Shown in pieces: positions 2,378 through 62,338 of a DNA stretch of 64,000 nt. The notes under the pieces were generated by a model that did no database searches, was not told the DNA's origin, and saw nothing but the letters and a program-made list of their open reading frames with translations. The DNA is taken from NCBI GenBank assembly GCA_020891255.1, contig BQFW01000007.1:2418001-2482000 (forward strand). The letters are read 5' to 3'. The position numbers and the translations under genes were made by a program. The DNA comes from Entomortierella parvispora E1425 (Eukaryota > Fungi > Mortierellomycota). Numbering within the stretch: the stretch's first letter is position 1; the number at the start of each line of letters is the position of its first letter.

Positions 2378-3211
2378 ATGTCGCTGCTTCTTGCCAAACA
2401 GGTCCTCAGAGGGTCAGTTATTGCCAAGTCCCTCCGCCCTGTGCCTTCTGTGTTGCTCAGATATAAGCACTCAGATCCCACCTCAACCCCCAACTCGAAC
2501 CCCACCTCAACCCTCAACTCGAACTCAGCCTCAGCCCCCAACTCGAACTCATCCTCAACCCCCAACTCAACCTCTGTCACGGAAACACACGGGCACACCG
2601 CTCTACAGGCAGAGATCATCAGTGGTGCTCCAGGTATGGCTGACAGACCGTGGAAGAGGCTATTAGTATACTTTGACTGCTGGGCTGGAACCAAGTTTAA
2701 AGTTTCTGATACTATTTGATAGAGGAGGTACGCTTGCACCCCTGTCGCATCTACAAGCAATCCAGGTCCGCAACTCAGTCGGGAATTGTCAACACGGGCG
2801 TCTGGAGAGTCGATTTCGATACAGAGCTGAATGCTGGTCAATTTGAGAACGAATTGATCGGCTGGGCAAGCAGGTATGTGTATAAAAGGAGAAGGAGCCG
2901 CGAAGTTCTGCTCTTAACAATCTGTGTGTGGCGTGTCTTTTAGCTCCGACTATATGCATGGCCTCCAGGTGAAATTCAACACCAAGGAAGAGGCGATCGC
3001 CTTTGCTGATAAGCAAGGTAAATAAGAAACAAAGTCGAAGTCAAGAGCCTTGCATTGCTTCCAACGCTATTTTATCTGACGTATGTCCTTCACTTTTATA
3101 GGTTGGGACTTTACTGTCGAGGAACCCAATCAGAAGATCTTCAAGAAGAAGGTCTATGCCGACAGCTTCAAGTATTCTCCCACCAAGCTTCGTTTCGTCA
3201 GCACCAAGTAG
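2378..3211 (+). CDS. NDUFS4: NADH:ubiquinone oxidoreductase subunit NDUFS4 (18/21 kDa), 4 exons
   Basis: Spliced product reads EIISGAP|EEVRLHPCRIYKQ..ATQSG..WRVDFD..ENELIGWASS|SDYM..KFNTKEEAIAFADKQG|WDF..EP..YADSFKYSPTKLRFVSTK*, with GT-AG introns. Confidence 0.93.
2477..2572 (+). repeat. Four degenerate 24-nt tandem units encoding PTSTPNSN-like repeats
   Basis: cccacctcaacccccaactcgaac and three variants, read directly. Confidence 0.9.
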
Positions 3212-3245
3212 GGAGTATCAGGATTATCGTTTTTGGCAGGGCATT

Positions 3246-3281
3246 CGTGTGTGGGACCCGTGTGTGGGACCCGTGTGTGGG
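3246..3281 (+). repeat. 13-nt tandem repeat (cgtgtgtgggacc) x2.8 downstream of the NDUFS4 stop
   Basis: Read directly. Confidence 0.9.
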
Positions 3282-3510
3282 TGAGAGGATCACGCGGGTG
3301 AGCAACCGCGTCGAAATGCAATAAAAGGAGACCTATTCGTCTTTAAAAATTTCAGCAAAGCCACCTTGGATCTTCAGTCGCGCTCTCAAAAAAGTTCCGC
3401 GTGAGGCCCTGCATGAAGATTCCTGTCATTTGTCACTGCTGTTCCATCGCCAACCTACAGCATCTACACTTGTCGACTCGGACCATCGACCAGCATTACA
3501 GGAACCGATA

Positions 3511-6500
3511 ATGGTACAGAGCAGGACACCCTTCGCTAGTCGACATGCGATGCATTGCTTTCATTTGCATCGCGTTTTACATTCTAATCTTGGTGGCGCA
3601 TGATCCCTTCTGTCCTATTCTTCAATCGTAGATTCGCTTCACAGTGCTGAATGAAGATGAGCAGGCAAAGTCAAAGGAAGAAGAGTCTGAGGAGATCCAA
3701 GTACTTCAACTGGAGGATAATATCAAGTGTTGCATGCTGCAGACGACCATCGGCCTGATCTAATCAATTTTTTTCTTTTCTTTTTTTACCAAAGGCCGAG
3801 AAGTTCCTGGGGGTTTACCAGAGTGCGATTAGACTAGTACAAAAGGGACAACTCAATGAGGCTCGCAGGATGCTCAAAAACTTGATCGAGTCGGATCTCA
3901 TGCAGAAAATCGATAATGATGTGCGTATTGCGATCGAAATGAGTCGACCTTATTGCAGCAACTGTTTATTTCGAGTGAGAGTGTTTTAACTGACCAGCGA
4001 AGGATCTACGCCTTTTATCTTTTACCTCCAATACAGACCGACATGGCCGCCAGAGGAACACCATTGAGACTGCTGCAATATCTTGTGTACACCAACTACG
4101 CCTCAATTCTTGAGCAGTGTCCAGACGAGTCTAGCGAATCAGTTCTCAAGTATTATCTCAAAGTATGCTGACATTGGACAGTGGTGACTTTATGTTTGTG
4201 AGGATAGAGCTACATGCTAGAAAACTCTTCTAATGCCTTGGCGTGTTTTAGGCCGTGACTTTTGACAGCTCTGATAATGCATTATGGGTTAAAATCGGGA
4301 AACTTGCAGCCACCGCACGAAAATACAAGTTGGCTAGATATGCTCTCGAATGTGGATTGCAACAGTCGAATCCTGAAGCTGGGGATGCAGAAGCAGCTGG
4401 ACATGTTGTAACAAGACTATCAGCTGACTACGACCTGACACCTTCCCAATGGACATGCCTGGAGGCACTCTGTGAGGTATCAGAAATGTTCGACCGAAGG
4501 TGTTTGCTCACAGGAAATCATCGCAGTCCGCTAACTTGATTGATTATCGATTTAGGTTCTCTATAAAATTGGCGATTTGGTCTCTTGTCAGGAGTATGTT
4601 CAAAAGGCTCTTCGATTGTCGCCGTACTTTGAACGTGGACTCGAGCTCCAACAACTTGTTCGTCGCAGACTGGAGAAAATTCAATCACCCGTCCCCGAGG
4701 ATCAGATTCAAACGGACGATACCAACATTCCGGATCAGAAGTCGGAGCTACCAAAAGAGTTGGTCTTGGACGACCTGTCATGGAAAGGGCTTGGCGAGCT
4801 TCTGCTTGAAGAATACAAGGTGTTGCTTAAAGCACCGGAAATGTCGTTTTACAATCGACGGCTAATTGTCGTGTCATCAGGGCCTCACAGTGAGGATGTA
4901 GATATGTCTGAGGAAACTGACATGGCTGAAGTTGAGCCTGAGGAAGAGCAGCCTGAGGGGAACGGCGATACGACAGGGAAACTGGATCCGGAGTCGCCAT
5001 CAGCTGAGCCTGTTGATATTGCCATGGATGCGCTCCCCGCCGACGAAGCGGCTACTCAAGCCGACAGAGAATCGACAGAGGCTGACCAAGGTGCAGCGCT
5101 AAAGCGCAAGAGGAAAGAGGTCGAAGAGAGATCTGGACTAAGGTAACACAGGATAAGCAATATGTATCTCTTCAGGATGTTTGCTAATCGTTGATTGCTC
5201 TCCAGGACATCAAAACGAGTTAGGGACAAACTGGACCAGTACGAAGTTACCAAGAAAAAGCGGGAAGAGGAGGAGCAGGAGACTCTGGCAAAATACAGGA
5301 TTGTTCTCTCAAAGTTTGGCATGGACCTCGAGAATGGATATTACGGAAACTCGTCAGAAGAATGTTTACAGCCGGACGAAATATTTCCTGGCGGTATATC
5401 TGGGGTCATTAGTATCTTCAACAAGCACTTGGAGAGGCCGAACGCCATAGTCCAGGCATCCACGATGGAGCATGTTCAGCAGTAAGTTCATCCCCCCGGA
5501 ATATATTTTTTAGTTATTTTTCGACATTCTAACTTTCTTATTTTAATCAATTGAAGGCAAAAAACCAACCACTTTGCTGTTTTCACTGATGATAAAACCC
5601 CAAGTACAACTGAGCCATTATTCGAGAGCAACTCTACTCTTTTGAATTTTGTTAAAGTCGCCAACGAGCAGAATTCTGGAGTGGTTGAGTACCTCTGCTT
5701 GTATATTCTGATGCTTATGTCAGGTACACCTCTCGAGGAATCAAAACTGAGTTGGAAGCTACGGTGGCCAAGTGGTGTGCGACCTGTCGTGAGCGAAATC
5801 GTGACACTCTTGGAGGATCGATTGTTGGAGTTTCTGCATAAGGAAGGCGAAGAGGAGGCTGCAACATTCTCAGAAGACCAGATGTCACGGTTAGAGGTAT
5901 GGATACAGTATTTTCAATCAATCAAAACGCGATTGTAGTAGTACCAACCAGACGCCCATCTAACAGTCTGAGGATTTTCAAACCTTTAGCTTTACCTCTC
6001 CATAGGAGAGCTATACCTTGATGAGATGGTATATACCGTTCTTCGACCATTCACGTTTGTTTCCAGGAGGAGCAGAGGAGCCAAAAAAATGGACGCAGAA
6101 GGGTTCGCAAAGTTGGAATGTTTGTTCCAGCGCTGGCTCGTACGTGCCGGGCAGAGCCTTCAATCTTTTGTGGCGGATGAAATTAGCAATTCAAATCAGG
6201 ACCCGAAGACAGCATCTGCATCGCTCAGGTACATTTTTTTAATCTTCTTGATCAGCAATTGCAATGCTTCGGAAAACTAATAGTCGCTTCTTTTAATAAT
6301 TAGGATTAATTGGATGATGGGGAGGTACTGCCAGAGTATAGGAGATGCAGAGGGGGCCATTGCTCGATTCGAATATTGTCAATGGATTGTTCAAGGCGAT
6401 TCTAATATACAGGTGACATTGCCGAACTGGTAAGTGAGGCTTCCGTAGATCTGGTAGCTACTTTTTCACCACAGCTCCCCTAACAATGTTTGAATACTGG

Positions 6501-7567
6501 ACACGGACATAGTAAATATGATACGACCGTAGACTCAGGAACTGTGCAAGACAGACTAGGAAAGCTCAAGACCCATCAATATGTACTGGATGCTGAACGA
6601 CTATTCAGCGAGGACGACTATCAAGCTGTCCTGACTCGACTAGAGCCAATCTTTCTTACTAAGGAGTCCTCTGATCCCACTTCGACTGCAACTGTCTTGG
6701 ATGAAGCCCAACCTGACGCCAATGATTTTAATACAATCGGAGGCTCCTTGTCTGAAAGAATCGAACTAATGGGCTTACTATATAAGGTACAATGCAAGCA
6801 AACGGCCTGATTCTGTTATATATAGCCGCGACGCTCACCATCCTAACATATGTTTTTGAAGTCTTGCGATGCACTGAAGGATAGGAAGAAACAATTCGAG
6901 TGTATCTCGGAAATGTTGGTTCGGGTGGTGACTGCATTAATCAATACGACAACCGAGCGAAGCGAGGCTACAGAGACGTGGTTTCTCTTCAGCCAAACGA
7001 ATCAACTGCTGTTGCTAATGAGGGAAACAATCCAGGCTTCAGATCTGGCTGAGCTTCTAGGATCTCTGAGGAGTAATCAACTTCAGAAGTTAATATGCTG
7101 CGTACTAGCAGTGGCGCGACTCGGATTTGTGAATGTATTGCACCAGGACCGACTTGTAGACGATGACATCAAGATTTCATACTCTGATCTCTTGAAGAAT
7201 CGGCCACATCTGGAGCAGTTCAACCTCGTTCTAGTTAGATCGTGGATTGTCCTCCTTCTTCTCTTGCCAGGGTGGGTTCCGGGCAAACTCGCTGATACTT
7301 CGTCAATCTCAGAACAGGATACAGCAGTCAAACCTCAGTTCGTGGCCATTCCTTTGGATATCACCGCCTCAGACCTGGATGCAGAGACAGTCCGTCGTGT
7401 TACTTCACAACCGCTGACCACAAACTCTTCCACTCCTGTGGCTTTATATCCGGGTCCTTCAACCGAACTGTACATGGAACTTATTGCTCTTGTGCATGAC
7501 GATTTTGGTGTTCGTGAAATCTGTGGTCTGGACAATAGTAAGTTGTGGATGCAGTTGAAGTCAGCAG

Positions 7568-7601
<34 letters not shown>

Positions 7602-10600
7602 CTAGACCTTTCTAATCATCATACATTATGAACTTTAGACAAACTCATCGAGCTGGCTCTGAAAGTGAGCTCACCGATGGAGGGCGTCTTCTATCGAAAA
7701 GAGGAAAATCAATGCTACTACTGTTTTTACGGGATATCGCTTAGTGTAAGTATGGTTATTCTCCTTGAGCAGTTCTGCCGTAAAGAGAATGCTAACATTT
7801 AACGCCTCTCTTTTTCTCTCAGGTCGATGGACAATATCCGATTGAGCACTCCTCGGAACCTGTTGACTTTGATAGAAAGGCTGCAACGGAGTTTTTCCCT
7901 CTGCTTGAACGATCCTTATCGGACCGTGCACTGAGAGGGCAAATACGAGGCGACCTCAAGGACGCAGTGGATCGAGTAGAGGAGGCTTTGGGTTCTCCCC
8001 CCTATGAGAGCAGTTCTATCTTGTCCATGAATCGCCATATCATCGATAGCTATCTGGCATCTGAGATCAACTTTGCAGAAGCTATCCAAGTCAACGCAAT
8101 TAGTCGATTGCCGACCATGGAGCAGGCACCATCCAGCAAATTGGCATCTGTTTATCGCAGTATCTACGCTATCCAAGGGAAGGTGTTCCTATCTCAATTT
8201 CGCAACAAGGCCAAGAACAACCAGTTTAAGCCGCTTGAAGATTTGCAACACGCGATTGATCAGTTTGGTACCGATCTCCATGTGAACCCCTACTGCTGGG
8301 ATTCATGGTATTCATTGGCGCTTTGCTACACTTTCCTTGCGGATGAGAACCTTGTCTTCAGCGCCTCCGATATTAGGAACAACTTCTCAAAGATCAAGGA
8401 CCTTCAGAGACGTGCTTTCCTATGCTTTTCGCAGGCTGCTCGACTTTCGCCAAAGAGAGGAAACAAGGTCGACCACGAGAGAAGTCAGTCTACATTTGGA
8501 GAAGGCGAACCAGAGGCGGAGGCATCTTGGGCAAGCGCCAGCCAAGAAGGCGAAGTGTCCGAACGGCCTGTACCTGAAGACTGCGAGCCAAAAGTTCCAT
8601 CGGGTCAGGAGACAAAGACAGCTAGCAGTGAAGATCAGGAGTGGCGCCATTCGCAGGCTGCATTCTGGTTCGACTTTGGAAATCTTGTACATGGAATCAT
8701 GTCTAAGCCTGTGCGGATGGAGGCTATGCACCGAACTGAGGGCCTGGAAGCTCTATCAGATACTGGCGACATTACCTCTATTTACATTCCAGAGCCAACG
8801 CCAGAGCAAGTGTACAAATTTGCTGCCTTTTGCTTCAAGCGATCTTTGTCTCTCAATGACCAGAACTGGCGAGCTCCTTTCATGCTTGGAAAGTGCGTCG
8901 AGAAGCTGAATGGAAAGCCTAGCCAAGTGCTTTCACTCTACAGACTGGCGGTGGACAAAGTACCAAGGCGGTCAGGCCAGCCTGGAAATGAGAGGATCTT
9001 TGAGCCTGCGTACAAGCTCATATCGACACTGACGAAATATCTGAACTCTGATAAAGTCAAGGTAAGGATGCGAGCAATGTACTACCCATTTGTTTTGAAG
9101 AGTAACTTGAGTTAAGCTGATAGAGCTGACATATCTTTGATACTCTAGCCGTCTGTGGTGGAAGCACAAATGACCAAGTCGTTGGTTCGATCGAAGCTAA
9201 GCACAGCTGAGGGTGATTCCTTTATATTTGAACCGCCAACAGAGTACCTCCAGACGATCGAGTCTCAGGAAGCGGACGAGCACAAGAACGGAAAGATGCA
9301 AGCATATCGCTTACTCTGTGAAGGCCTGGCACGGATACGACACGTAGATAAGCGGCACTGGCACCATCGTCCTGCATTTAGGGTACAATAGCGAAGTGAC
9401 TTTGGCTAAGCTTTGTTCTGATGGTTCAAATGGGCTAACAATCTTCATTCTGATTGTACAAATAGCAATCTTGGATTCTCTACCATATATACCACGATGT
9501 CGAGCGTGCCAAAGCGGAAATGCTTAGCTTATTCCAGATGAAAAGCAATCTGAAAACTTTGGTGAGCGCAGTGTGGAAGCCCGAGTTTGAGCGAAGCGGA
9601 AAGCACTTTGTGTATGTGGGCGAGTATACAAAGTTTCTGATTGTGCTCGCCAAGGAATCAAAGGACGTGGAAACTCTGAACAGTCTGGCCAAGAAGATAC
9701 GACGTGCCAATGCTCTACTGCTGGATCTTAAGGAAGTCTGGGAACTGTTGTATGACTCGTATCTCTCAGTGCTGGGCGAATTAGTTGGACCTGAGCCTGC
9801 TTTGGCCGTGGCGGAGGTGATCCCAAGAATGGAATTTCGGGAGAAGGCCGCCATCTACGAGGCAAAAATGTTTGAACAGGATCCAAGACCGGCTGGACTC
9901 ACCGTTCTCATGCGATTGTGTGAATTGAAGAAGCTGAATGACAAACTGGCACCTGAGGGACAGATGGGTCATTATTTGGCAGTTTGTTACAGCAAACTCT
10001 TTATTGAGGTTGGCGGTGCGGAACTGTATCCCAAGGAGCTGCTCCGCCAACTCTCTAATCCCTCTGAACCAGCAGCGGACACAACGATGGTTGTTGACGG
10101 AGAAACTTCAGCGATGGATGTCGACGGTGGATCCGAGTCCACACCAGTGGGTACCGACTCTACAAGGAACTCGGAGGGCGACGGCGAGGAAGACGATCAC
10201 AAAAATATGCGGACGAAAATGGAGCGACTGACTACCGAGGTTCCAATGGCATCGGATGATTCTGAAGTGAAGGCCATGGAGACTGAGGAAAACGTGGCCA
10301 CAAATGTGAGTGTCGACATCAACCCAGCCAGTAATACCGCGGATGCCTCGGGCGTAGACACCCCAGCCAAGGATGGAGAGACCACTGCAAACGACGGAGT
10401 AGCAGCCATTGAGGACTGGAAGAGTCGCAAGAAGATCAGCGCGACAGAGCTCGCGTCGAGAGCCACGATTATTTTCAAGGCACCTCCACCATCACTCAAA
10501 GCGCCGCAGAGTTTACAAAGTAAGCTTGCTGGGCCGCCCTTGGAGGAAAACGTGAATTCAAACGCGGCAAATAACGATTCTGTGCCAGAGGAGTCTACGG

Positions 10601-49559: not shown

Positions 49560-52508
49560 CTAGTACAGCATCTTTGCTCGAGCTCGAGCCTCGAGCAACT
49601 TTTCGACCTCGTGGCTAGCTGGATGCAGGCCATCATCCCTGGCAGCCTTGACTGTGTAATGTCTCAGGAGAGCATCGCGTCGTACGAAAGGTCGGTGACA
49701 GAAATCGCATGGCCAGGTCATCTCCTTGTGTTTCGAAGTCTGGTGCCGTTTCAAGTCATGAATCCGTCCAAACGACTCAAACGGGCAGAGCTCACATTTG
49801 AATGTCATGGATTCCGTCTGTGGATTGAAGACCATGATTGCACCTTCTGCCTTGTTCTTGATGACGTGAAGTGACGAAGAAGAGGAAGCAAACGCAGGCG
49901 ATGACTGGTGGAGGGAACGATGGACAACGGAATTGTGGCTACGGTGGTCATTGCCCCGATATTCCACGGAAGGTGGTCTCTGTCCTGGGTGGCGCTGTTG
50001 CTGAATATGATGGTTTTGGTGATTTTGTTGATGAGGATTGACTGCAATCGTGGATTGTTGATCAGACGATGAGGATCGATAGCCAGGTAGGCTCCAGGGC
50101 TGGGCAACATGAGTCGATTGCGGTTGCTTTGATGCAGAATGATGCTCAAACGAAATATGACTCTGCTCCGGCTGTTGATGTTGGGAAGGAGGATACGGGT
50201 CTCGATACATCGAATGCTGCTGCTGTGGAGCTTGCGCATGTCTGTGGATGTTGGGCTGAACTACAGAGCTGGAGCGGTTAGAAGGGTAGGGTGGAGGAAG
50301 GTACGTGCTGGGTGGATATGTTGGAGAGATGGATGACTCTGCCGAGAAGGAATGGTTCGAGGATTCACTGGAGGACGATGAAGAACTATAGAGCGGAGGT
50401 TCTATGAGTCCATGCGGACGACAGAAGTCATCCGTTGGTGGCGCTTTGATGCGAGGCAGTAGCTTCGTGAATCGATGGCGATGTGGATGATCATGGTGCT
50501 GCTCCTGTTGTTGTTGTGGCTGTTGGCTATCATACCAACTATGATGATCCTCTTCCTGTCCAAGCTCATCCTGTTCATCTCCCTGCAGGTAACCGTCCTT
50601 GCTAATCGGCGGTAATCGATGTTGCATGGGCGTCTGTGCGTTGCCATGCACGTAGTTTGACTCTTGGACGCTTTCCACTTTGGGCGATCTCAGCGACTGT
50701 GGCGAGAGGGAGAGCAAAGATCTTTGTGCGCCTAACTGTGGAGCACCTGTAGACAATCCAGGAGGGGAGAAGGGAGGGCTCGGTGATGGCGGATGTCGCT
50801 CGTACAGCGTCCTTTGAGCTTCGCTCATGTATCCAAAGCTTGGTGCTCGACGCATGGAGGGCGAAGGCGTGGGCGAAGACTGTCGTCTCTTGAGCAGGTT
50901 CGTTCCAGGGAGAGATCTAGGGTAGGGTGCCATCGGCAGATGTGGGCTGTCTGTCCTGGGTGCCGCGACTGCCATGGCTGCGTCTGGATCGGAGGGCGAG
51001 GTCAAGGGTGAGGCAGACAGAGGGCGAGAAGAAAGAGGGGAATGAGCATGGGGTTGCGCCACCAAAGGCCAGGAATGATGCTTACGATCTCGCTGGATTG
51101 TATGATCGGGACCGATAAGAACCGTGGATTTGTTTGCGACCCTTGCTGCTCCTGGCGTTGCGCCCAGGGTCGCGGCGGTGGCCATGGCCCCCCTGGCGCG
51201 CGGGAACGGATCCGTCCTGGCCACCCGCGCATGCTTTTTCTGTCGGTGGCTCTCCAGGGCCAAACCTCCTTCCTCGTCCTCGGCAAAGTCTGGACGGTAC
51301 ATCAAACGATGCTCAGATTGGGATCGACCCAGGGCTCGAAGAGATAGAGCCCTTGACTGCCCCTTTCCTTCTTCTTGGCGTCCATCGTTGTATTCGTACT
51401 CGTATCCATGTCTATCTGACCTCTTGGGTCGATCCTGGTCCCCCCTCCAACACATTTCCTCATCTCGACGGTAGTGTGGTTCGTCTTTACTGTGCCCGCC
51501 GTAAGAGTGTCGTTTCATGATTCTAGCCGGAACCATCGAACTTGGAGAAAGCGAGCTAGAGTGCTGAGACGAAGGAGATGAGGAAGGAGACCAACCGCGC
51601 TGCGGCTCACATTGATCCATGGCGCTGCTTGACTCTGATTTCAGCAGCTCAATCCGTTCTTGCTCTCCTCCCTCTTCCACTGGCTGTTGTCGTCCTCCTT
51701 GTTGCGTAGTCATCTCATCGATGTCCATGTCTGTCGCTGTGATAGGGGTTCTTTTTGGCAAAGATAAAGAAAAAGATGAGGATGATGACGAGGATGGGAT
51801 GACTTGCGAGTCAGAGACCGTGTCAGAGATGGGGGCTGGAGTGGGCGGTGCAGCTATTGTTGGCCCGACTGGTGGTGATTGTCGACCGTGCAGGACAGGG
51901 AAAGAGAGCGGGAGCGGCGAAGGCGGCGGATGGCTGTGGAGTGAATAATGTCTCTGTGGCACAAACGGGGATGGTGGCAAAGGCAACGGAGGGGACCCCG
52001 TGCGACCGTCGAATCCACTGCTGTTGTTATTGTTGTTGTTGTTGTTATTCTTGTTCTTATGGTGTAAGAATGGTGGCAAAGCGTGCTGATCTCGGCGGGG
52101 TCGCTGGAGATGAGCCTGTCTTTGGGACTGATTATATGAATATAAGGAAGAGGAAGGCGAGAAGGTCGAAGTCAAGGACAAAGACGATGAAGAAGGCTGG
52201 ATGATGAGACCAGGGCTACTGCTCTTGCTGCTGTTGTGTGGTACAGATGCTGAATCCCTTGACTGTTCGAATGCACAGTATCCCTCCTGGTACTGTTGGT
52301 GTTGGTGTTGATGATGATGATGATGATCATGATGTTGCTGTTGCTGTTGTTCGTGACAGTGGCTGCGAGAAAGGTGAGACTGGTGTGGAAGAGAGAAACG
52401 GTGGTGATGTGGATGAAGGTGATGGTGATGAGGAAGATGTTGGGAACTATGGTCTGCACGGGCGACCGCTGTGTCATTGCCTCCGATCTTACTGTTGTTG
52501 GCGAGCAT
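49560..52508 (-). CDS. Intronless C2H2 zinc-finger transcription factor with a long His/Gln/Ser/Pro-rich N-terminus
   Basis: C-terminal CELCPFESFGRIHDLKRHQTSKH and CDFCHRPFVRRDALLRH. The start is uncertain: ATG 52508 is preferred, but an in-frame ATG exists at 52895. Confidence 0.85.
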   Translation of the reverse strand: MLANNSKIGGNDTAVARADHSSQHLPHHHHLHPHHHRFSLPHQSHLSRSHCHEQQQQQHHDHHHHHQHQHQQYQEGYCAFEQSRDSASVPHNSSKSSSPGLIIQPSSSSLSLTSTFSPSSSLYSYNQSQRQAHLQRPRRDQHALPPFLHHKNKNNNNNNNNNSSGFDGRTGSPPLPLPPSPFVPQRHYSLHSHPPPSPLPLSFPVLHGRQSPPVGPTIAAPPTPAPISDTVSDSQVIPSSSSSSSFSLSLPKRTPITATDMDIDEMTTQQGGRQQPVEEGGEQERIELLKSESSSAMDQCEPQRGWSPSSSPSSQHSSSLSPSSMVPARIMKRHSYGGHSKDEPHYRRDEEMCWRGDQDRPKRSDRHGYEYEYNDGRQEEGKGQSRALSLRALGRSQSEHRLMYRPDFAEDEEGGLALESHRQKKHARVARTDPFPRARGAMATAATLGATPGAARVANKSTVLIGPDHTIQRDRKHHSWPLVAQPHAHSPLSSRPLSASPLTSPSDPDAAMAVAAPRTDSPHLPMAPYPRSLPGTNLLKRRQSSPTPSPSMRRAPSFGYMSEAQRTLYERHPPSPSPPFSPPGLSTGAPQLGAQRSLLSLSPQSLRSPKVESVQESNYVHGNAQTPMQHRLPPISKDGYLQGDEQDELGQEEDHHSWYDSQQPQQQQEQHHDHPHRHRFTKLLPRIKAPPTDDFCRPHGLIEPPLYSSSSSSSESSNHSFSAESSISPTYPPSTYLPPPYPSNRSSSVVQPNIHRHAQAPQQQHSMYRDPYPPSQHQQPEQSHISFEHHSASKQPQSTHVAQPWSLPGYRSSSSDQQSTIAVNPHQQNHQNHHIQQQRHPGQRPPSVEYRGNDHRSHNSVVHRSLHQSSPAFASSSSSLHVIKNKAEGAIMVFNPQTESMTFKCELCPFESFGRIHDLKRHQTSKHKEMTWPCDFCHRPFVRRDALLRHYTVKAARDDGLHPASHEVEKLLEARARAKMLY

Positions 52509-54024
52509 GAGGTTCGTTGGCTGCTGTGAGGAGGAGAAGGGAAGGGAAGGAAAGGGGGCCGAACGGGCGAGGGTAAGGGTGAGGGTGAAGGTGAGGGTAG
52601 GAAAGAGAAAGAAAGAGAGAGGGTGACGACGGAGAGTGAGATGCAAAGAGATTGACGAGAGGAAAGAAGAGAGTACAAAAACGGACGCGTCGCGTTTGAA
52701 GGGATCAACGAAAGGGACAGAGATGGGTGGAATGTGCGGGTGGTGGGTGCAGGAAGGGAACAGAGCAAGACAAAGGGAGAGTATAGATCGGCAGGACCAG
52801 AGGAAAAAACTCAGGTGGTGGTGGTGGTCGTGGTCGTGGTGGGGCGGTGGCTGAAGATCCTGCGTGTCCGGGGTCACCGTGCCGTGATGTGGCACAGATG
52901 GGCTATTTTTTCCTCTTTGTTTCCTTGGTCTATGGGTTCTACCAGTGTGTCTGCAAAGAAGAAAAGGCGAAAGAGAAGCAAAGACGGCGACCCCTTTGTC
53001 CCTGTTGTGGTTCCTGAAGGCTGACGGCGGAAAGGAGGATCAGGATTGGAATGTAGAAAGGAGGGATGGGGTGCAGAGAAAATGAGATGGGACGAGGGTG
53101 GTGCCCTGATGGCGATAGGATGTGGGCCAGGTGGTTATGCAATGCAGCCAAGCAGAGAAAGAGAGAAATAGAAAATGACAAAGGATAAAGAAACAAGATA
53201 CAATCAAGGGCCCCGTCATCAATGGGCCCAGGCGGCGGTGGTGGTGGTGGGGAAGAGTTGATCTTGGGAGACAAGAGGCAAAGATAGGACTGAACACAAA
53301 GGGAAAAAAGCAAAAAAGAGCCAGGGACACACGCACGGGCGAGCGGGTGAAGTGATGATGCAGGGGATCCGAACGAGGGGGAGGGGGAGTGGACAGGCAA
53401 TCCAGATACAATGGGCAGACGGCGAAAGAGGGACAGAGACCGAGACTAATGGCAGCTGGCAGAGAGAGAACACGAGAGGGATCAAGAAAAAAAGGAGGCC
53501 CCAATCCTTTTATACCGCCGTCTGGCTTTTGCCACCAATCGCCATGTTTGCTTTTGCTTTTGCTTCGCCACCAAAATGGTGCATGCAAGCATGCATGCAT
53601 TGCATTGCATCCTTTGCCATGGGCGCAGGGGCAATGGCATGTCAGGCAAGCATTGGGACTCGGCAATGGTGGTTCCCGTAGTGGTGGGAGTGGGGATGGG
53701 TGGATGGGTGAGGATGCACGCTTCTTCCCTCGACACTCTGTCGCCCACTGGGCATGCATCGGAGCGAGCAGACGAGACCGGAATCGGTCCTTTGATCTAA
53801 CATTCCTCCGTCTGCTACTCCTTCGGTCGACACTTCTCAAGTTCAAACAGGACAGTGCCACTGCAATGGAACAAAGGAGGTTCATGATCTGTCCACCCAT
53901 GCCAACTTCCTCCTTTCTTTCGTGTGACAAACATAATCATCCCAGTGGCCAAAGTGTATTTTTATTTGAAAGTAGCTGCCCCAATATCCACACCCGCAGC
54001 GCAGCGTTCTTGATCTTCGACTCA

Positions 54025-57000
54025 TCACTCCAAGTCGATCGAATACGGAAGCAACCTCAATGCCGCGCGCGCAAGATACGCAAACGTGCCCTCTTTTCCT
54101 TCCTGCGGCAAGTCATAGAACATTCTTCTTGCCAAGCTCTCGTGGTGCTCGAACCCAACCTCGATCTTGGGAGCAACAACAGCGGTCGCGGCACCTTTGA
54201 TCGATGACGCAGATGACGCCGAAAAGGACGCGGCTCCAAGAGCTGATCCGGGGGCACCACCAGGAACACTATGTCCACGACCACCTGGTCCATTCACGAC
54301 CCACTTTGTCCAAAACTTGCTCATGGCCTCTCTCATAATCAAAGGCAAATCGATCACCTCTGGTTGAACCTCCATTCCTGGATTTCGGTCCTCAATCTTG
54401 GCAATGACCATCAACGTCTCGACTGCAATCTGTCTCTCAGCTGGGTCTAGGATCACCCCCAAGAAGTTCTCTACCGCCAACGCAAAATTGAATTCTTCCG
54501 GCGTCTTTTCGGAGACGATTGGATCCCGCGGCAATACGTGAGTTTCCACTTTGAATCCAGCAGATCGGGACAGGATGCGCCAGACTCGAGGATAAAACTT
54601 GTCAGGAACACGGTTCAACGACCCATCGTTCTTACGACGTCGCAACCAACGGCCCGACGAATTTGGTACAAAGGCTGCAATGGCGGAGGGGGAAGGGAAC
54701 GCCTCTTCGACATCGGCTTTGGCCTTGTATTTGTTCAGGTCTATGGTTCTCTCGATTACAGGTGTAGGACCATCCTTGAATCCTTTGTGAGCCTCGACCG
54801 CCTTGCCCGGTTCTCCTCCTGTGAAGACCAAATCAAAGTTAGATACTGGAAAAGACATTCATTTCGACCACATAGCATAGGTTCAATTGCTCCACTTACC
54901 CTTTTCGCCGATCATGCACCAAGAGTCGCGGTATTTGAGCAAGCCAAGACTTTCACTGCCGAGCTGCTTCAAGGCCAATCGGGCAGCGCTACTCAGGTGC
55001 TCATAGCAATCGTCCTTCGCGCTGCAGACGACAATCATACCCGGTTGCAACCAGTCCACGAGACGCGCCAAGTCATCACTCTCATCTTCCGAGATATGGG
55101 TATCAAACGACACGGATTCGATCAAAACGCCTTGAACGGGATCAATAACCACCATGTTAATACCACGCGAGGATACAGACATGGTGCTCTCGTTGATTAA
55201 AATCTTTGAAAAGTTGCCAGAATGGTATCCGCCTGATTGGACCTTAATCGTCACCTCAGTTGACCCCTGACCGAGATTGGGGATTGGAACTGCACCCAAA
55301 GAGACCGAAGTGCCTGACGATGCAATATTCTTGGATACGTTACCGTCTCCAACTCCTTCGCCAGGAAGAGATGTCAAGGGACGACGGCCGGACATGGTAG
55401 GACTCAACCTTCCAGACGATTGGTTTCTCAGCAGAGTGTTTGTGGCATTGGCACTCAAAGTTGGACCGGACAGAACCGTTCCCAAGAGGGACTTGAGCTC
55501 AAATGGCGACAACTGCATCAAGTGTTCCACAGCTTCGGCTTCGTCACAACTATTGAGGCGAGAGATCTCTTCCCGCAACGCAATGATCAAGAAGTGTGTC
55601 CTCAGCCGCATGATTCCCTCAAACATCTCTGGGTCCGCTCTAATGAATGATCCGAGATAGATCAGAACCTCCTGGACCACAGGCCCCTCACGAACATCGT
55701 CAAAGTTTCCATCGTCGTAGATCATACGACTGAGGACATCTGGCCCCAGAGGACTATTGATAAAGTGCTCCGAGGGTGCTGATCCGATCGTCACCTGTTT
55801 CTGACGAATTACAAGATCTGTAATGTTGATGGTCAGCGAGTTGACAACCTTGGTGAGCAATCCTGCAGCTTGTCGGACGATCGACCACAGCTTCAGTTGC
55901 AAGGACTTGAAGTACACTTCTTCCAAAAGCGTCTGAACAGTAGCATCAAGAGCATTGACGAAATAGTCAGCTCCTTGACAGGACAGCAAGTACTGCAATA
56001 AATCTATAGAGGGAGTGATGTCAGTCAAAGATGGGTCCAACATTGCCATTTTCCTTGTAAGCAGAGGCTTTTGATTTTAACCTTACCAACTTGATCATAA
56101 AGGTTAACTGAGATAGACAGCATGTTCTGAGCAGCCTTCATGTTGGATGGGTCACCCAGGGTCAACCCCAAGCTGTCCATGCTGCCATCAGGAGAGCCAT
56201 CCTCAAAGTCGTCGTCGTCGCCTAATGGGAACGCACTTTCCAGCGCATGGATGGAAGGCCCCTCCGAAATCTCGAGGTTGACAAGGTCCGGAGTCAAAAT
56301 ACCCGACTGGAGAGCTGGATTGCTTCCCTTTCGAGTAACGCGTTGCTCCTCATGATCCTTGAGCTTAAAGGCCTTGGCTTGACCACCTTTCTTGGAACGC
56401 CTCGATGTTATATAAGGCTCTGAAGGCTCTGCAGCCTGGGCATGAGGTGACATTGACGTAAAGGCGTGGACAGTGACCTCAGAAGCCGTACGAGAATGGG
56501 ATCCAAAGTAATAGTCACCCTCCAACTCATTGTTGACAGCTGGCATAACAAGCGATGCGAAGGAATAAATTGAGCCAGCCACAGAGGGCTGGCGACGCAT
56601 AGACCAGCGATGGTTGCCAGGTGTTCTGCTACCGGATGCTCCAGGGGTGGCAGCCTGGGTCTGTCGCTCGTTGAGTCCCAGTTTTCTGGCATTGCGACTC
56701 TTGCGGCGGTCGGCCGCTCCTCGAAGGATGCCCAACCAGTCAATATCCTTCTTGGTGACCAAAAAGTCAAGCGACTCGATGCAGGAGGTATTGACCATCT
56801 CACTCAATCGACCGAGTCGGACACGGACATTGTTGCAAACACCGCTCCGGAGGGTCATGAAGAAATTGAGTAGGTTCCGCTTATTGTCTTTTTGAGGATT
56901 GGATCCGAGAGAGGTCTTTCGCCAGGTAGTCAGACGTTGAGCCTCGGCATCTGTCTGAGATGCAAACGTGCGCGATTTTGACAAACCACCCAGCATGGCA

Positions 57001-59514
57001 TGGGTGAGCAAAACAACCATTGTTGGACGTCCTGGGTATTCCCAATATTGACGTACAAACGCCAACTCTTGTTCAAAGATGGAGATCAAATAGTCGTTGT
57101 CGCTTGTCAGGTAGAACTCCTCGTTGTCCATGAAATGAGGCGTGAACGCGTAGAGGTGACCCTGGACTCGGTAAAGACGCGATGTCCCAAGAGATCCAAC
57201 GGGGCGTTTAGGTCGACCCGAAAGACCCAACTTTGAGTTCCTGCCTAACGCTCCATAGACCTCCTTGAGACCCTGTGGATGACTGACGGTGATGGGGTGG
57301 ACCTGATCCATGGTCTGAGTTTCAAGACCATACATGTTGAGCATGCTTTGAAGATTGGCATCTTCGGCCAAGAGAACGACTTGAACAACTGTGTCGTTTG
57401 ACTGGGTCTTGCGAGCATTGAATCGACGGCCCAAAGGATCAATCTCGGCAACACTGAGAAGATTCTCATAAATGAGATTTCCAAGGGTGTGAAGAGAGTT
57501 TGCCCAGACCAGAGGCAGGTTGTCGTTGGCCACGCGCGCCTGAGAGTGGTTGTTTTTCTTCTCGGCATCCACCAAGTGATTGGGCACATAGTAGAGCTCG
57601 GGGATAAGTGGAATATGCTCTGGAAGTTTTCCCTCGCTGTTACTAGCAGGCGTGGCGAATCCAGGGGAGGTTGGTGTCTTTGGGCTGCGTCCACCATCGC
57701 TCTCAGACATATTGTCGGCAATGTACTGACCAAAATCAATCAGCGTGGCCGAATCGATGATCAAGGGTTCCAATTTGGCTCTGTATTCCTCCACCTGGTC
57801 TTCGTTCTCGCTGAAAAGTCCATCGAGAATAAAGTACGTGAAGAACAATGGCCACTCGCACTCGATGTTTTCAAAGATCTTGAGTTCCTGCGCATCATAA
57901 TGAAGGCGCGAGGTGTCTATTTCGAATGGAAACATCAGAGTTAGAATTACTGATTAAAGCAGATCATTCCATAGCAGCATCCTGTATGGGGCGTGGTTTC
58001 TTACTCTCGAGTACAGTCTGGTGGCCGTCTCGAAGGAATCGCTTGCATCCATATTTGCCACCAAGCTTTTCCACAATCTCGTCCCGAGTACGCTTGACTA
58101 GCTTGGCATCTCCGACTGCAAAGGCAGGGAATCCAATCACAGAAAGAAGAGCGGCATCAATCTCCTTCGAATTGGACTCTCTTGGAAGCGCTGAATGGAG
58201 GGTGGTGTAGTTGCGGGTGATTTCGTCGGGTAAGACGTGGATGACCTACAAGAAGAAGTCAAAGTTAGAAACCGTCCAACCATGATGAAACTTTGATACC
58301 TGTTCATGGGCCTTTGGCAGCTTACTGAGCTTGCGCCACCTCTGGATCCAAAGAGATTAATGCCGTTGATGGCCTGCAACGCGGCAACAGCCATTCCAAT
58401 GGAGGAAGAGTTCAACTCTGGTTCACCGTGATTGATTTTGTTGCCTCTCTCCCAGATACCGTAGTCCGGAGTGCGGTACGCCCGTTCAATGTAAAAGACC
58501 AAGTTTTGAATAAAGTCAACCTCATCGGTTGTGTAGACGATTAGCATCCCAGAGGCCGTCATCTGAGCCAAGGCCAACAAAAAGATCGACGTTGCGTCGA
58601 TCTGCAGATGACCCCACTCCGAATCACCCACGACTGTGTCACCAGTCGCGGTATTGTATTTCGCATGAAGACAATCGTTTAGCCCCTGCGTGCGCTTGAA
58701 CTGTTCAATCTTTGGAGCCTGACGCATCATGCAAAAAAGCAATCCTCGCATCAGCTTGACCACAGCATGCTCGAGCTCGTCTATTTTTTTTTTTTTTTTT
58801 GAAAAAGAAGAACGTCAGTGTTTGCGCCATACCCGTCGGACGCGTCGTTGTGCCCGCAATCGCTGCCCTACACAAGGCTCACGGCGCACAAAGGTGGAAA
58901 TGACGACAAGGTTTTTTTTTTTTTTTCACCAATGTTGGGGCAGCGAAAAGGTGGTCGATGCACGTTTTCGCGCAGGGGCACAATGGTGGCCTTATCGCCG
59001 ATCCACTCAGAGGCTGATAAGAAATATATGAAATGCCCTCCGTACAACCCGTCATGACACCATGGGTCATTCCCTCATTCCCACAGAGTGTGTTCACACA
59101 GGCCAAAACTCACCCATGATTAACCTCATCCTACGGTCCACCTATTCCCCCCCCCCCCCACCACCACCACCACCACTAATAGTCGTACTTACAAGAGCGG
59201 CCTTCATCATCATCGACGCGACGGTACGCAAGAGCAAGGCCAAAGACAGCCATGATCGAGTACACATTATCTCTAGGAACCACCGAGTGAATAAATATGA
59301 GCACATGTGTTCGAGGCGTAGGCTCTGCATTTGACAAAGATCCTTGATCTTCTTACCGAACCCAGGCATCTCGATAGTCTCCGTGAGTGGTCACAGCGAC
59401 CGAGGCGGGGATCAAGCCGGTGGTTGGATTCTGGCGGTTGAGGATAACCGCATTGACCGAGCGATAGTAGAAATCGAGTCTCTTTCTCACGCTAGCCTGA
59501 GAATGGTACTGCAT
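54025..59514 (-). CDS. Phosphorylase kinase regulatory subunit alpha-like protein (GH15-like fold) with an inserted ILEI/PANDER-like domain, multi-exon
   Basis: [88 protein letters not shown], and the C-terminal [15 protein letters not shown] all match recalled PHKA motifs in order. Confidence 0.9.
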
Positions 59515-60262: not shown

Positions 60263-62338
60263 ATGAGGCTCTTCAAAGCCCTGGCCGCCATGGCGCTGCT
60301 GCTTCCAGCAGTTGTCCGAGCTCAACGGCTTATTGGATACTATGGCAAGGTATATCCGAAAATCGCTTCAGATCTCGATGGCATCTTTAAAACATCTTCC
60401 AATCCTAACTCTTCTCTCCACCTCTTTTTTGAATGAAAACGAAAACAATTCGATGCCATTATATCAATAGACGGTGGGAGAGTGCTCCGACCGCCCAACC
60501 TTCCAACCGAAAGACCTCCCCATAGACTTGTACACACATCTGAACTTCGCGTTCGCTTTGATCAACAACCAAGGAGTCATTTCCATCCAAGCCGATAAGG
60601 ATCTACCACTTTACAGGGAGTTGAATGACCTGAAGAAGAAAAAGCCAAGTCTTCGCACAGCTGTCACGGTTGGTAAGGATCTCTCTTTTTGACCCCCCCG
60701 CGTGTCAGTCAAAATTTTACGAATGTGTTCACCGGGGACGTGGTATTTATATTTGACAAATACATAAATGCACGTTGTCTGTTGGAATGAATAGGTGGAT
60801 GGGATATGGACATGGCCCACTATTCAAAGATGGTCTCCACTCCTGATAACCGTGCAAAGTTCATCAACTCCGCCATTGCGTTTGTGCGCTATCATGGATT
60901 CGATGGCCTCGATTTTGATTGGGAATAGTATGTTCTCATCAATGCTGTGTTCAAGTCTTCCTCTCATCAGTGGGACGGAAAAAAAAAAAGAAAGGTATCC
61001 TGTAAGGCTGACGCTTGACATCGTGACTACTTGACCCATAGCCCATCAGACAAGCTTAGAGGAGGACATGACAATGATCCTCAGAACTTTGTCACTTTTA
61101 TGAAGGAGATGCGCGCGGCTGCAAACTCGGAACAACTCAAGGATGGTCACGAGCGATTGATCTTGAGTATTGCCTTGCCTGGAGGACCCTTCCATGGTGA
61201 TTACTTTTTGGTTCCCAAGTTAGCAGAGTATGGTAAGAATGAATACAATTCGCTGATGCAGCCCCAGGACAAAGCTTTTTGCTGCCAAGTTTCCTAACTA
61301 CGCGGTATTTTTTTTTTTTTTTCAGTCGATTGGTTCAACATCATGGCATATAATTTGCACGGGTAAGACTGACAAGAATCATCGCATCCACCATCCATAC
61401 CCCCACGTCTACCAGAAACCTACATTCATTTATCAGGTATTTACAACTCTTTACTAAACTTACGATTTCTTTTTTTCTTTTTCCACAGGTTTTGGGAAAA
61501 GATGGTTTTTTGTGCCGCTCCCTTGAACGACCCTGCTCTCAACACTGAGTACAAAGGCTACTCTCTCGTAGACGCTGTCACATCCATGGCACCCAAATCC
61601 GTTAATCCCAAAAAGTTCAACCTTGGTCTTTCCCTCTCGGGTGTTACCTTCACCCTCAAGGACAAGAAGAAGACCGCTCCAGGCTCGCCCGCCAACGGTC
61701 CCGGAAAGGAAGGATGTCAAGAAAAGGGAGCCATGGCTTACTTTGAGGTCAAAGAGCTGACCAACAATTTGCAAATTTCAGACGTCAAGGACCGCGCTCC
61801 CGATGCCTTTCATCGTGTCGTCACACAAGCCCCCAAGATGGATGAGCTCTCGAAATGCATGTACATGGTCATCAACAATGATCAATGGATCGGCTATGAT
61901 ACACCTGAGACCTTCGCTTATAAGGTTGATTATCTCAAGAACTACGGATTCGGAGGCGTGAGTATCTGGTCTATGGACAGTGACACTTCCAATCACGAAC
62001 TCACAAACTCGATCCACGACTCTCTGCACAAGGGACACGTACAGGATGCGCCTAAGGATGAGAAAAAGGTGCCAGCGGCGCCCCCCAAAGATGCCCAGCC
62101 CAAGGCGCCAGTGGTTGATACAAATACACCAAAGGCACCTGTTCAGACTGTCAAGCCAGTTGAGAAGCCAGTTGAGAAGCCAGTTGAGAAGCCTGTTGAG
62201 AAGCCTGTTGAGAAGCCTGTTGAGAAGCCTGCTGAGAAGCCAAAGGAAACGCCTGCCAGCTCAGCTTCGCGATTTACTCACGATGACTTCTCCCTGTTGG
62301 CATTGGCCATTGTGAGTCTCAGAATCTTGATTGTATAG
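60263..62338 (+). CDS. GH18 chitinase with signal peptide, Lys/Pro-rich stalk and hydrophobic GPI-type tail, multi-exon
   Basis: MRLFKALAAMALLLPAVVRA, THLNFAFA, TVG|GW, intact catalytic FDGLDFDWEY, MAYNLHG, WIGYDTPE, GGVSIWSMDSD. Confidence 0.92.
62153..62242 (+). repeat. 12-nt tandem repeat x7 encoding (KPVE)6-KPAE
   Basis: aagccagttgag x3, aagcctgttgag x3, aagcctgctgag x1. Confidence 0.95.

Follow-up and report, generated by a model that had tools for sequence, protein, structure and literature searches.

The DNA analyzed here, called the window below, is a stretch of 64,000 nucleotides from the fungus Entomortierella parvispora E1425 (contig BQFW01000007.1, positions 2,418,001 to 2,482,000 of the forward strand); unless another contig is named, positions are numbered within it. 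Its minus strand carries, at 54028-59514, a gene of seven exons for a phosphorylase kinase (PhK) regulatory subunit of the alpha/beta type, 1552 amino acids long, which was assembled by frame analysis and splice-site matching and identified through Pfam and through matches to the human subunits PHKA1 and PHKB. Within this subunit sits a complete, well-folded ILEI/PANDER domain of the FAM3/POMGnT1-stem type. The domain, about 147 amino acids long, is encoded on the minus strand in two parts: the main part at 54900-55257 (residues 1171-1289 and the first base of the split codon for Gly1290), and a C-terminal pair of strands at 54736-54818 (the rest of the Gly1290 codon at 54818-54817, then residues 1291-1317, ending in VIERTIDL). 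Apart from this PhK regulatory subunit, the fold is known only in proteins that are secreted or luminal.

A first-pass annotation, made by reading the sequence, had proposed an ILEI/PANDER (GG-type lectin-like) domain at 54745-55260. Domain search, structure prediction, and structure comparison bear out the identity, and the peptide blocks quoted in that annotation are all present in the minus-strand frame where it had placed them. The Pfam family ILEI (PF15711) matches residues 295-384 of the minus-strand frame 54883-56049 with E 3e-23 and 82.6 bits (cut-off 27), covering positions 1-89 of the 90-position profile. When this stretch is compared with the PDB sequences by phmmer, the matches are the POMGnT1 stem (4e-11), FAM3A, TMEM2, FAM3B, and FAM3C. 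An AlphaFold2 model of 54901-55263 (minus strand), built with a 61-row alignment, has a mean predicted local distance difference test score (pLDDT) of 94.8 and a predicted template modeling score (pTM) of 0.88. Comparison of this model with the PDB by Foldseek gives 21 matches at E<=0.001, every one of them FAM3A, FAM3B, FAM3C, the POMGnT1 stem, or TMEM2, with template modeling scores (TM) by query of 0.70-0.89 and root-mean-square deviations (rmsd) of 0.9-2.3 A; the first match outside this set is at E 0.8. The main part of the domain is defined by these four analyses; its C-terminal part comes from a model of the Umbelopsis ramanniana orthologue that includes both linkers. In that model, two further strands (E210-214 and E224-229; pLDDT 94-96) lie past the GxKG motif, and their addition raises the TM by target to the POMGnT1 stem from 0.64-0.68 to 0.77-0.82. 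Since the fold runs about 30 residues past an intron in the gene, the domain is 55257-54900 plus 54818-54736 (residues 1171-1317) and straddles that intron.

The protein around the domain is homologous to both human subunits in a collinear fashion (1.6e-24 and 1e-17 for PHKA1; 1.9e-22 and 2e-26 for PHKB). Pfam finds matches to the N-terminal GH15 domain (PF00723) on the exon pieces of the window gene; in the full-length Umbelopsis orthologue this domain is found at E 4e-86. The KPBB_C domain (PF19292; E 6.3e-23 in the window gene) is split by the ILEI domain, with profile positions 4-35 matched before it and 68-188 after it. The protein begins directly in the region conserved in animal PhK alpha/beta subunits, and the N-termini of the orthologues align from residues 3-10 of the cytosolic human PHKA1. 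It contains no signal peptide or membrane segment and no hydrophobic N-terminal stretch; the highest 19-residue Kyte-Doolittle window, at 1.76, falls within the conserved N-terminal region homologous to the animal subunits. The CaaX farnesylation motif found at the C-terminus of animal alpha and beta is likewise not present in the window protein, which ends in LLPYSIDLE. The gene product is a cytosolic-type PhK alpha/beta regulatory subunit, as had been supposed, and it departs from the secretory, luminal, or extracellular location common to all characterized ILEI members. The three cysteines of the window domain are not conserved across the fungal copies, which fits a cytosolic location.

Alignment with the human subunits indicates where the insert lies. 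Upstream of it, a helical region (55453-56003, minus strand) aligns with PHKA1 788-968 and PHKB 744-914; downstream, the remainder of KPBB_C (54031-54654, minus strand), which ends in YSIDLE, aligns with PHKA1 1053-1139 and PHKB 915-1035. In the nomenclature of PMC10978961, which names domains D1-D5 and whose text gives no domain boundaries, these regions would be D4 and D5, respectively. In human PhK these two domains are homologues of one another, and D5 binds gamma in the alpha subunit and dimerizes in beta (PMC10978961). The insert, therefore, appears to lie at the D4-D5 junction, between two homologous C-terminal domains. It comprises about 240 amino acids: a 65-residue linker (linker 1, residues 1106-1170; 55258-55452, minus strand), the 147-residue domain, and a 27-residue linker (linker 2, residues 1318-1344; 54655-54735, minus strand) whose length and sequence vary among orthologues. 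The alignment to human alpha halts at residue 968 and resumes near 1037-1053, while that to PHKB is continuous (914 to 915); the insert therefore replaces alpha residues of about 969-1050. The alpha stretch found there is an 80-residue, Gly/Pro-rich, flexible multiphosphorylation segment that is invisible by cryo-electron microscopy (PMC11950179). The suggestion that the ILEI domain stands where animal alpha has its multiphosphorylation region is thus confirmed by these alignments together with PMC11950179.

The disordered segment with conserved protein kinase A (PKA) sites that is typical of the animal alpha subtype is not found in the fungal protein; the ILEI domain occupies its position. 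Linker 1 was recognized by its composition (65% S/T/G/N/P/A). Among orthologues it ranges from about 16 to 125 amino acids, with neither length nor sequence conserved, and in the Umbelopsis model the upstream linker has pLDDT <50 and is predicted to be disordered. The RLSP and RRPLTS motifs that the first-pass annotation had used to connect this region with the animal phospho-loop are indeed present in linker 1, before the domain (residues 1119-1133 of the window protein). However, they are not common to the orthologues, among which no conserved phosphorylation motif was found in the linker, so the analogy with the phospho-loop rests on position only.

The exons of the gene, all on the minus strand, lie at 59514-59357, 59272-59193, 58780-58326, 58245-58005, 57916-56087, 56003-54900, and 54818-54028 (stop codon included). 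The sixth holds both the helical region upstream of the insert and the main part of the ILEI domain, and the reading frame passes from the one to the other without a stop or a change of frame. The six introns obtained from six-frame reading and splice-site matching are all of the form GTAAG..YAG, and five of them are 80-88 nucleotides (nt) long. No RNA run was listed for the E1425 strain; transcript continuity was therefore investigated with Logan contigs from four runs carrying the same species label, compared with 53900-58300 at a threshold of 80% likeness. One contig of run X10 (7022 nt, about 86% identical to the window) covers 58242-58013, 57916-56087, 56001-54899, and 54817-54035. It omits three stretches with GT-AG ends and keeps the ILEI exon. 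Because these stretches are skipped in the X10 contig where the X5 and X9 contigs retain divergent sequence, the X10 contig is taken to be derived from a transcript. It corroborates the three 3' introns. A start of exon 6 at 56049 was dropped in favor of 56003, first through a search for frame-consistent GT-AG pairs and then through the X10 joint.

The last X10 joint, 54817 to 54899, skips 81 nt with the ends CT..AC on the plus strand. It defines the intron within the ILEI fold (54819-54899, minus strand; GTAAGT..CACAG), which directly follows MIGEK. Removal of this intron joins MIGEK to GGEPGKAVE, in agreement with every orthologue and with the GxKG motif of the family. A 54-nt intron at 54846-54899, across which continuity had originally been proposed, would instead add nine residues seen in no relative. 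The X10 joint, the orthologues, and the family motif together place the intron at 54819-54899; continuity stands, and the intron bounds are corrected. The ILEI domain is part of the mature mRNA, which contradicts the idea that the segment might be spliced out.

Intron 2 (58781-59192), with 412 nt, is five times as long as the other introns; within it are a (GGT)n/poly-G run at about 59150-59175 and poly-A runs at about 58785-58800 and 58910-58925. The PhK gene is flanked by a minus-strand gene at 49560-52895 for a long His/Gln/Ser-rich protein with C2H2 zinc fingers at its end, and by a plus-strand set of open reading frames at 60474-62338, a multi-exon gene that is chitinase-like by reading alone and has a C-terminal (KPVE)n repeat.

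The fusion is clade-wide in most early-diverging fungi and is not peculiar to the E. parvispora genome. An exhaustive HMMER search covering 1.84 billion cluster representatives yielded 1293 matches; among the best 150 of these, about 40 have the order PhK helices, ILEI, KPBB_C. More than 60 public fungal proteins from independent assemblies contain the fusion. It is found in Mortierella (79% identical to the window over the 900 alignment columns of the tree described below) and Umbelopsis, in about 30 genera of Mucorales, in Calcarisporiella, in Basidiobolus, Syncephalis, and the Kickxellomycotina (Linderina, Spiromyces, and Ramicandelaber), and in Gonapodya, about a dozen chytrids, Blastocladiella, and Rozella. 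Across the fungal phyla, the ILEI domains of these PhK subunits are 33-56% identical to the window copy. Neither the HMMER search nor further searches gave a named match to the fusion from Dikarya, and no ILEI domain was found within PhK in proteins of animals, Corallochytrium, or Ichthyophonus (gene models only for the two protists). The Rozella allomycis protein (EPZ31984.1) has a full PRP3 splicing-factor domain (residues 23-219) before the PhK subunit and probably represents two merged genes.

Some annotated proteins from these groups appear to lack the domain. For two of them, this is an annotation error in which the predictor took the coding domain for an intron: by tblastn, the ILEI coding sequence is intact between its flanking exons in Phycomyces blakesleeanus (protein P0035; positions 6896-7249 of locus L001, KV440975.1) and in Batrachochytrium dendrobatidis (protein P0025; positions 5442-5813 of locus L003, GL882880.1). 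In the models from Mortierella sp. AD010 and AD011 (P0151 and P0001), 21 residues are clipped from the domain. Since predictors splice ILEI out in some annotations, surveys of domain architecture under-count the fusion. Synchytrium microbalum is a different case. At its locus (QEAO01000020.1; positions 7648-7748 of locus L002), about 100 bp separate the blocks that precede and follow the insert, with no ILEI match between them, and in the tree its branch falls within the ILEI-bearing chytrids. Here the domain has genuinely been lost, secondarily, inside the chytrid clade.

The tree, a quick maximum-likelihood analysis of 43 proteins in which the ILEI columns were kept in the alignment, places all the fungal copies in one clade with a Shimodaira-Hasegawa-like approximate likelihood ratio test (SH-aLRT) value of 100, and broadly follows the species tree. 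Pairs of paralogues arise within lineages, in Chytridium, Dinochytrium, Chytriomyces, Rhizopus, and Chlamydoabsidia. An assignment of such pairs as the orthologues of alpha and beta was considered and rejected. Both chytrid paralogues score alike against human alpha and beta (760 versus 701 and 773 versus 717 bits, or about 57 bits more to alpha); given these like scores, a single clade, and lineage-specific duplications, there is no alpha/beta correspondence. On this tree, the simplest history is a single gain of ILEI on the fungal stem, after which the domain was kept as the gene duplicated, with a single loss observed.

Two observations concern further copies. A protein from an ENA metagenome scaffold (P0135; positions 3001-6270 of locus L004) is intronless, has 1089 amino acids with GH15 and KPBB_C and without ILEI, and is sister to all the fungal copies (SH-aLRT 100); its gene adjoins genes for a squalene/phytoene synthase and for an amine oxidase resembling phytoene desaturase. 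In addition, a second, more divergent set of contigs matches the window at 54275-54534, 55024-55248, 55421-55705, and 57041-57919. One record of this set (X9, record 13) aligns with a portion of the ILEI region and is compatible with a second PhK regulatory paralogue in the species group; two ILEI-bearing paralogues are also found in chytrids and Mucorales.

In the POMGnT1 stem, Arg129, Asp179, and Arg207 contact N-acetylglucosamine (GlcNAc) directly (PMC9802357). Sugars are also bound by FAM3C, FAM3A, and a nematode domain that have this triad, and a domain lacking two of the three residues does not bind (PMC9802357). By HMMER alignment to 5ggj_A, the corresponding residues of the window protein are Arg1201 in RGIN (55165-55167), Asp1252 in KDD (55012-55014), and Arg1280 in YRDSW (54928-54930), all on the minus strand; among 45 fungal copies they are retained in 43, 44, and 44, respectively. 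The triad is, however, a signature of the whole ILEI family and so cannot identify the ligand. Several ILEI proteins retrieved in the search (hits P0074, P0012, P0137, P0062, and P0127) are not PhK subunits; they are extracytoplasmic and glycan-related, with repeats 28-43% identical to the fungal domain. They include an alpha-amylase catalytic domain with three ILEI copies (P0074), acyltransferase-3 membrane proteins of the polysaccharide type with 3-6 tandem copies, and C25 peptidases that combine two copies with CARDB and a type IX secretion tail. Such repeat proteins may point to the lineage that donated the domain and to roles connected with glycans. The PhK regulatory subunit is itself built from glycoside-hydrolase-like domains (PMC10978961).

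On balance, the ILEI domain is probably a tethered, lectin-like carbohydrate-binding module of the PhK regulatory subunit. The low pLDDT and lack of conservation of linker 1 read as those of a tether, and the persistence of the fusion across fungal groups from Rozella to Mucorales argues for functional constraint. A module held on such linkers would bind carbohydrate, most plausibly glycogen chains or another sugar. It could keep the kinase complex attached to its substrate, which is bound to glycogen, or else inform the catalytic subunit of carbohydrate status. In early fungi, the loop through which animals receive hormonal (PKA) input would then be the site of a carbohydrate-binding one. A bolder proposal, which we offer tentatively, is that a cytosolic lectin governs glycogen breakdown in early-diverging fungi, with the ILEI domain reading the state of the glycogen particle or a sugar metabolite and gating kinase activity. 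Several points weigh against a carbohydrate-binding module. Binding by the fungal copies is a property that we infer from sequence; the conserved triad, being family-wide, says nothing of the ligand; and the known ligands of the relatives are GlcNAc, mannose, and similar sugars rather than alpha-1,4-glucan. In addition, FAM3C forms domain-swapped dimers, so that a role in protein contact is possible; Synchytrium manages without the domain; and the transcript used as evidence is that of a relative differing by about 14%, not that of the E1425 strain itself.

The alternative that survives best, although we consider it rather unlikely, is that the domain is a module for protein-protein contact or oligomerization, which might join regulatory subunits into dimers, or serve as a docking site for glycogen phosphorylase or for the catalytic subunit, and so make up for the absent CaaX-farnesyl "glue" of the animal subunits. 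Foldseek ranks domain-swapped dimers of mouse FAM3C first; the CaaX motif is missing from the window protein, whereas in human PhK the farnesyl groups of that motif stabilize the D5 dimers of beta and the contact between alpha and gamma (PMC10978961); and the insert is adjacent to the region aligning with the gamma-binding domain of alpha, which in beta dimerizes. However, it is the residues of the sugar pocket that are nearly invariant, and long, non-conserved, partly disordered linkers suit a module that reaches out better than they suit a fixed interface. The same linkers count against a second alternative, that the domain senses a sugar or sugar nucleotide that is small and soluble (glucose, GlcNAc, uridine diphosphate-GlcNAc, or similar) and modulates kinase activity allosterically, without tethering the complex to glycogen. 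The insert is suitably placed for this at the regulatory loop, the relatives bind monosaccharides on resins, and a water-filled cavity has been described for the family (PMC9802357). Nevertheless, floppy linkers offer no obvious path for allosteric transmission, and such a sensor seems somewhat less probable still. The loss of the domain in Synchytrium, and a 1993 statement cited in PMC11950179, would be consistent with a tolerated passenger in a permissive surface loop, having no present function. This is improbable for a domain kept at the level of identity given above, with a near-invariant pocket, across fungal phyla and through several independent duplications. Finally, an artefact, in which the ILEI stretch would be intronic, belong to another gene, or stem from a join in the assembly and so not be part of the PhK protein, is suggested by the gene models that splice out or clip the domain, and is effectively excluded by the frame that is open from the PhK helices into the domain, the spliced contig that keeps it, the like order in the independent assemblies, and the coding sequence intact at both loci said to lack it.

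The first-pass annotation had also suggested that the architecture was undescribed. In full-text literature, no paper was found on a fusion of an ILEI, FAM3, or GG-type lectin domain with phosphorylase kinase, or on one in fungi. The architecture is, however, not rare: it is present in the precomputed Pfam annotation (PF15711, PF00723, and PF19292) of those more than 60 public proteins, and it appears in AlphaFold DB as "Phosphorylase kinase alphabeta." As a model of kinase regulation, phosphorylase kinase is a classic, and fungi outside Dikarya, with a lectin-type domain at the site of the alpha phospho-regulatory loop, offer a natural experiment on how the enzyme is targeted to glycogen. The fusion bears on open questions about this targeting of the holoenzyme and about the role of its glycosidase-like regulatory domains (PMC10978961), and for studies of ligands the fungal domain offers a member of the FAM3/ILEI fold that is soluble and does not depend on disulfides. 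If the proposal of a cytosolic lectin is right, this would be the first cytosolic, functionally assigned member of the fold. Carbohydrate binding would then be indicated as ancestral for the FAM3 "cytokines," whose activity is poorly understood, and gating would occur at a loop that animals later put under PKA control.

Among known systems, one of the closest to the window domain is the stem of POMGnT1 (PDB 5GGJ/5GGL/5GGN), the carbohydrate-binding domain of a Golgi glycosyltransferase. It is the best PDB sequence match to the window domain and the best structural match to the full Umbelopsis domain, at the E and TM values given above. The triad equivalents are all present in both, and both have the C-terminal two-strand extension after GxKG, although identity is about 25%. 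The settings differ: the POMGnT1 stem is luminal, lies N-terminal to the catalytic domain, and binds beta-GlcNAc on O-mannosyl glycans, whereas the window domain is mid-chain, on linkers, in a protein without a signal peptide or membrane segment. FAM3A, FAM3B, and FAM3C (which include PANDER and ILEI) have the fold (TM by query 0.85-0.89, rmsd 1.6-1.8 A), the Pfam family, and the triad in common with the fungal insert but, unlike it, are stand-alone secreted signaling proteins. On the kinase side, PHKB is homologous throughout, and the C-terminal block of the window protein scores 96 bits to beta versus 67.5 to alpha. PHKB has no loop at the insert site, where its sequence is continuous, and its phosphorylation sites are N-terminal, unlike the alpha loop. 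PHKA1 (PDB 8JFK) is homologous to the fungal subunit along its whole length, with the chytrid orthologues at 760-773 bits to human alpha, and its residues at about 969-1050 are topologically the same site as the fungal insert. The fungal copies differ from animal alpha in that the window protein has no CaaX motif and in that they are about equally distant from alpha and beta and form a clade of their own. At the shared site, the animal alpha loop is an 80-residue, Gly/Pro-rich, disordered target of PKA; in the fungi, the loop is a folded domain of 147 residues.

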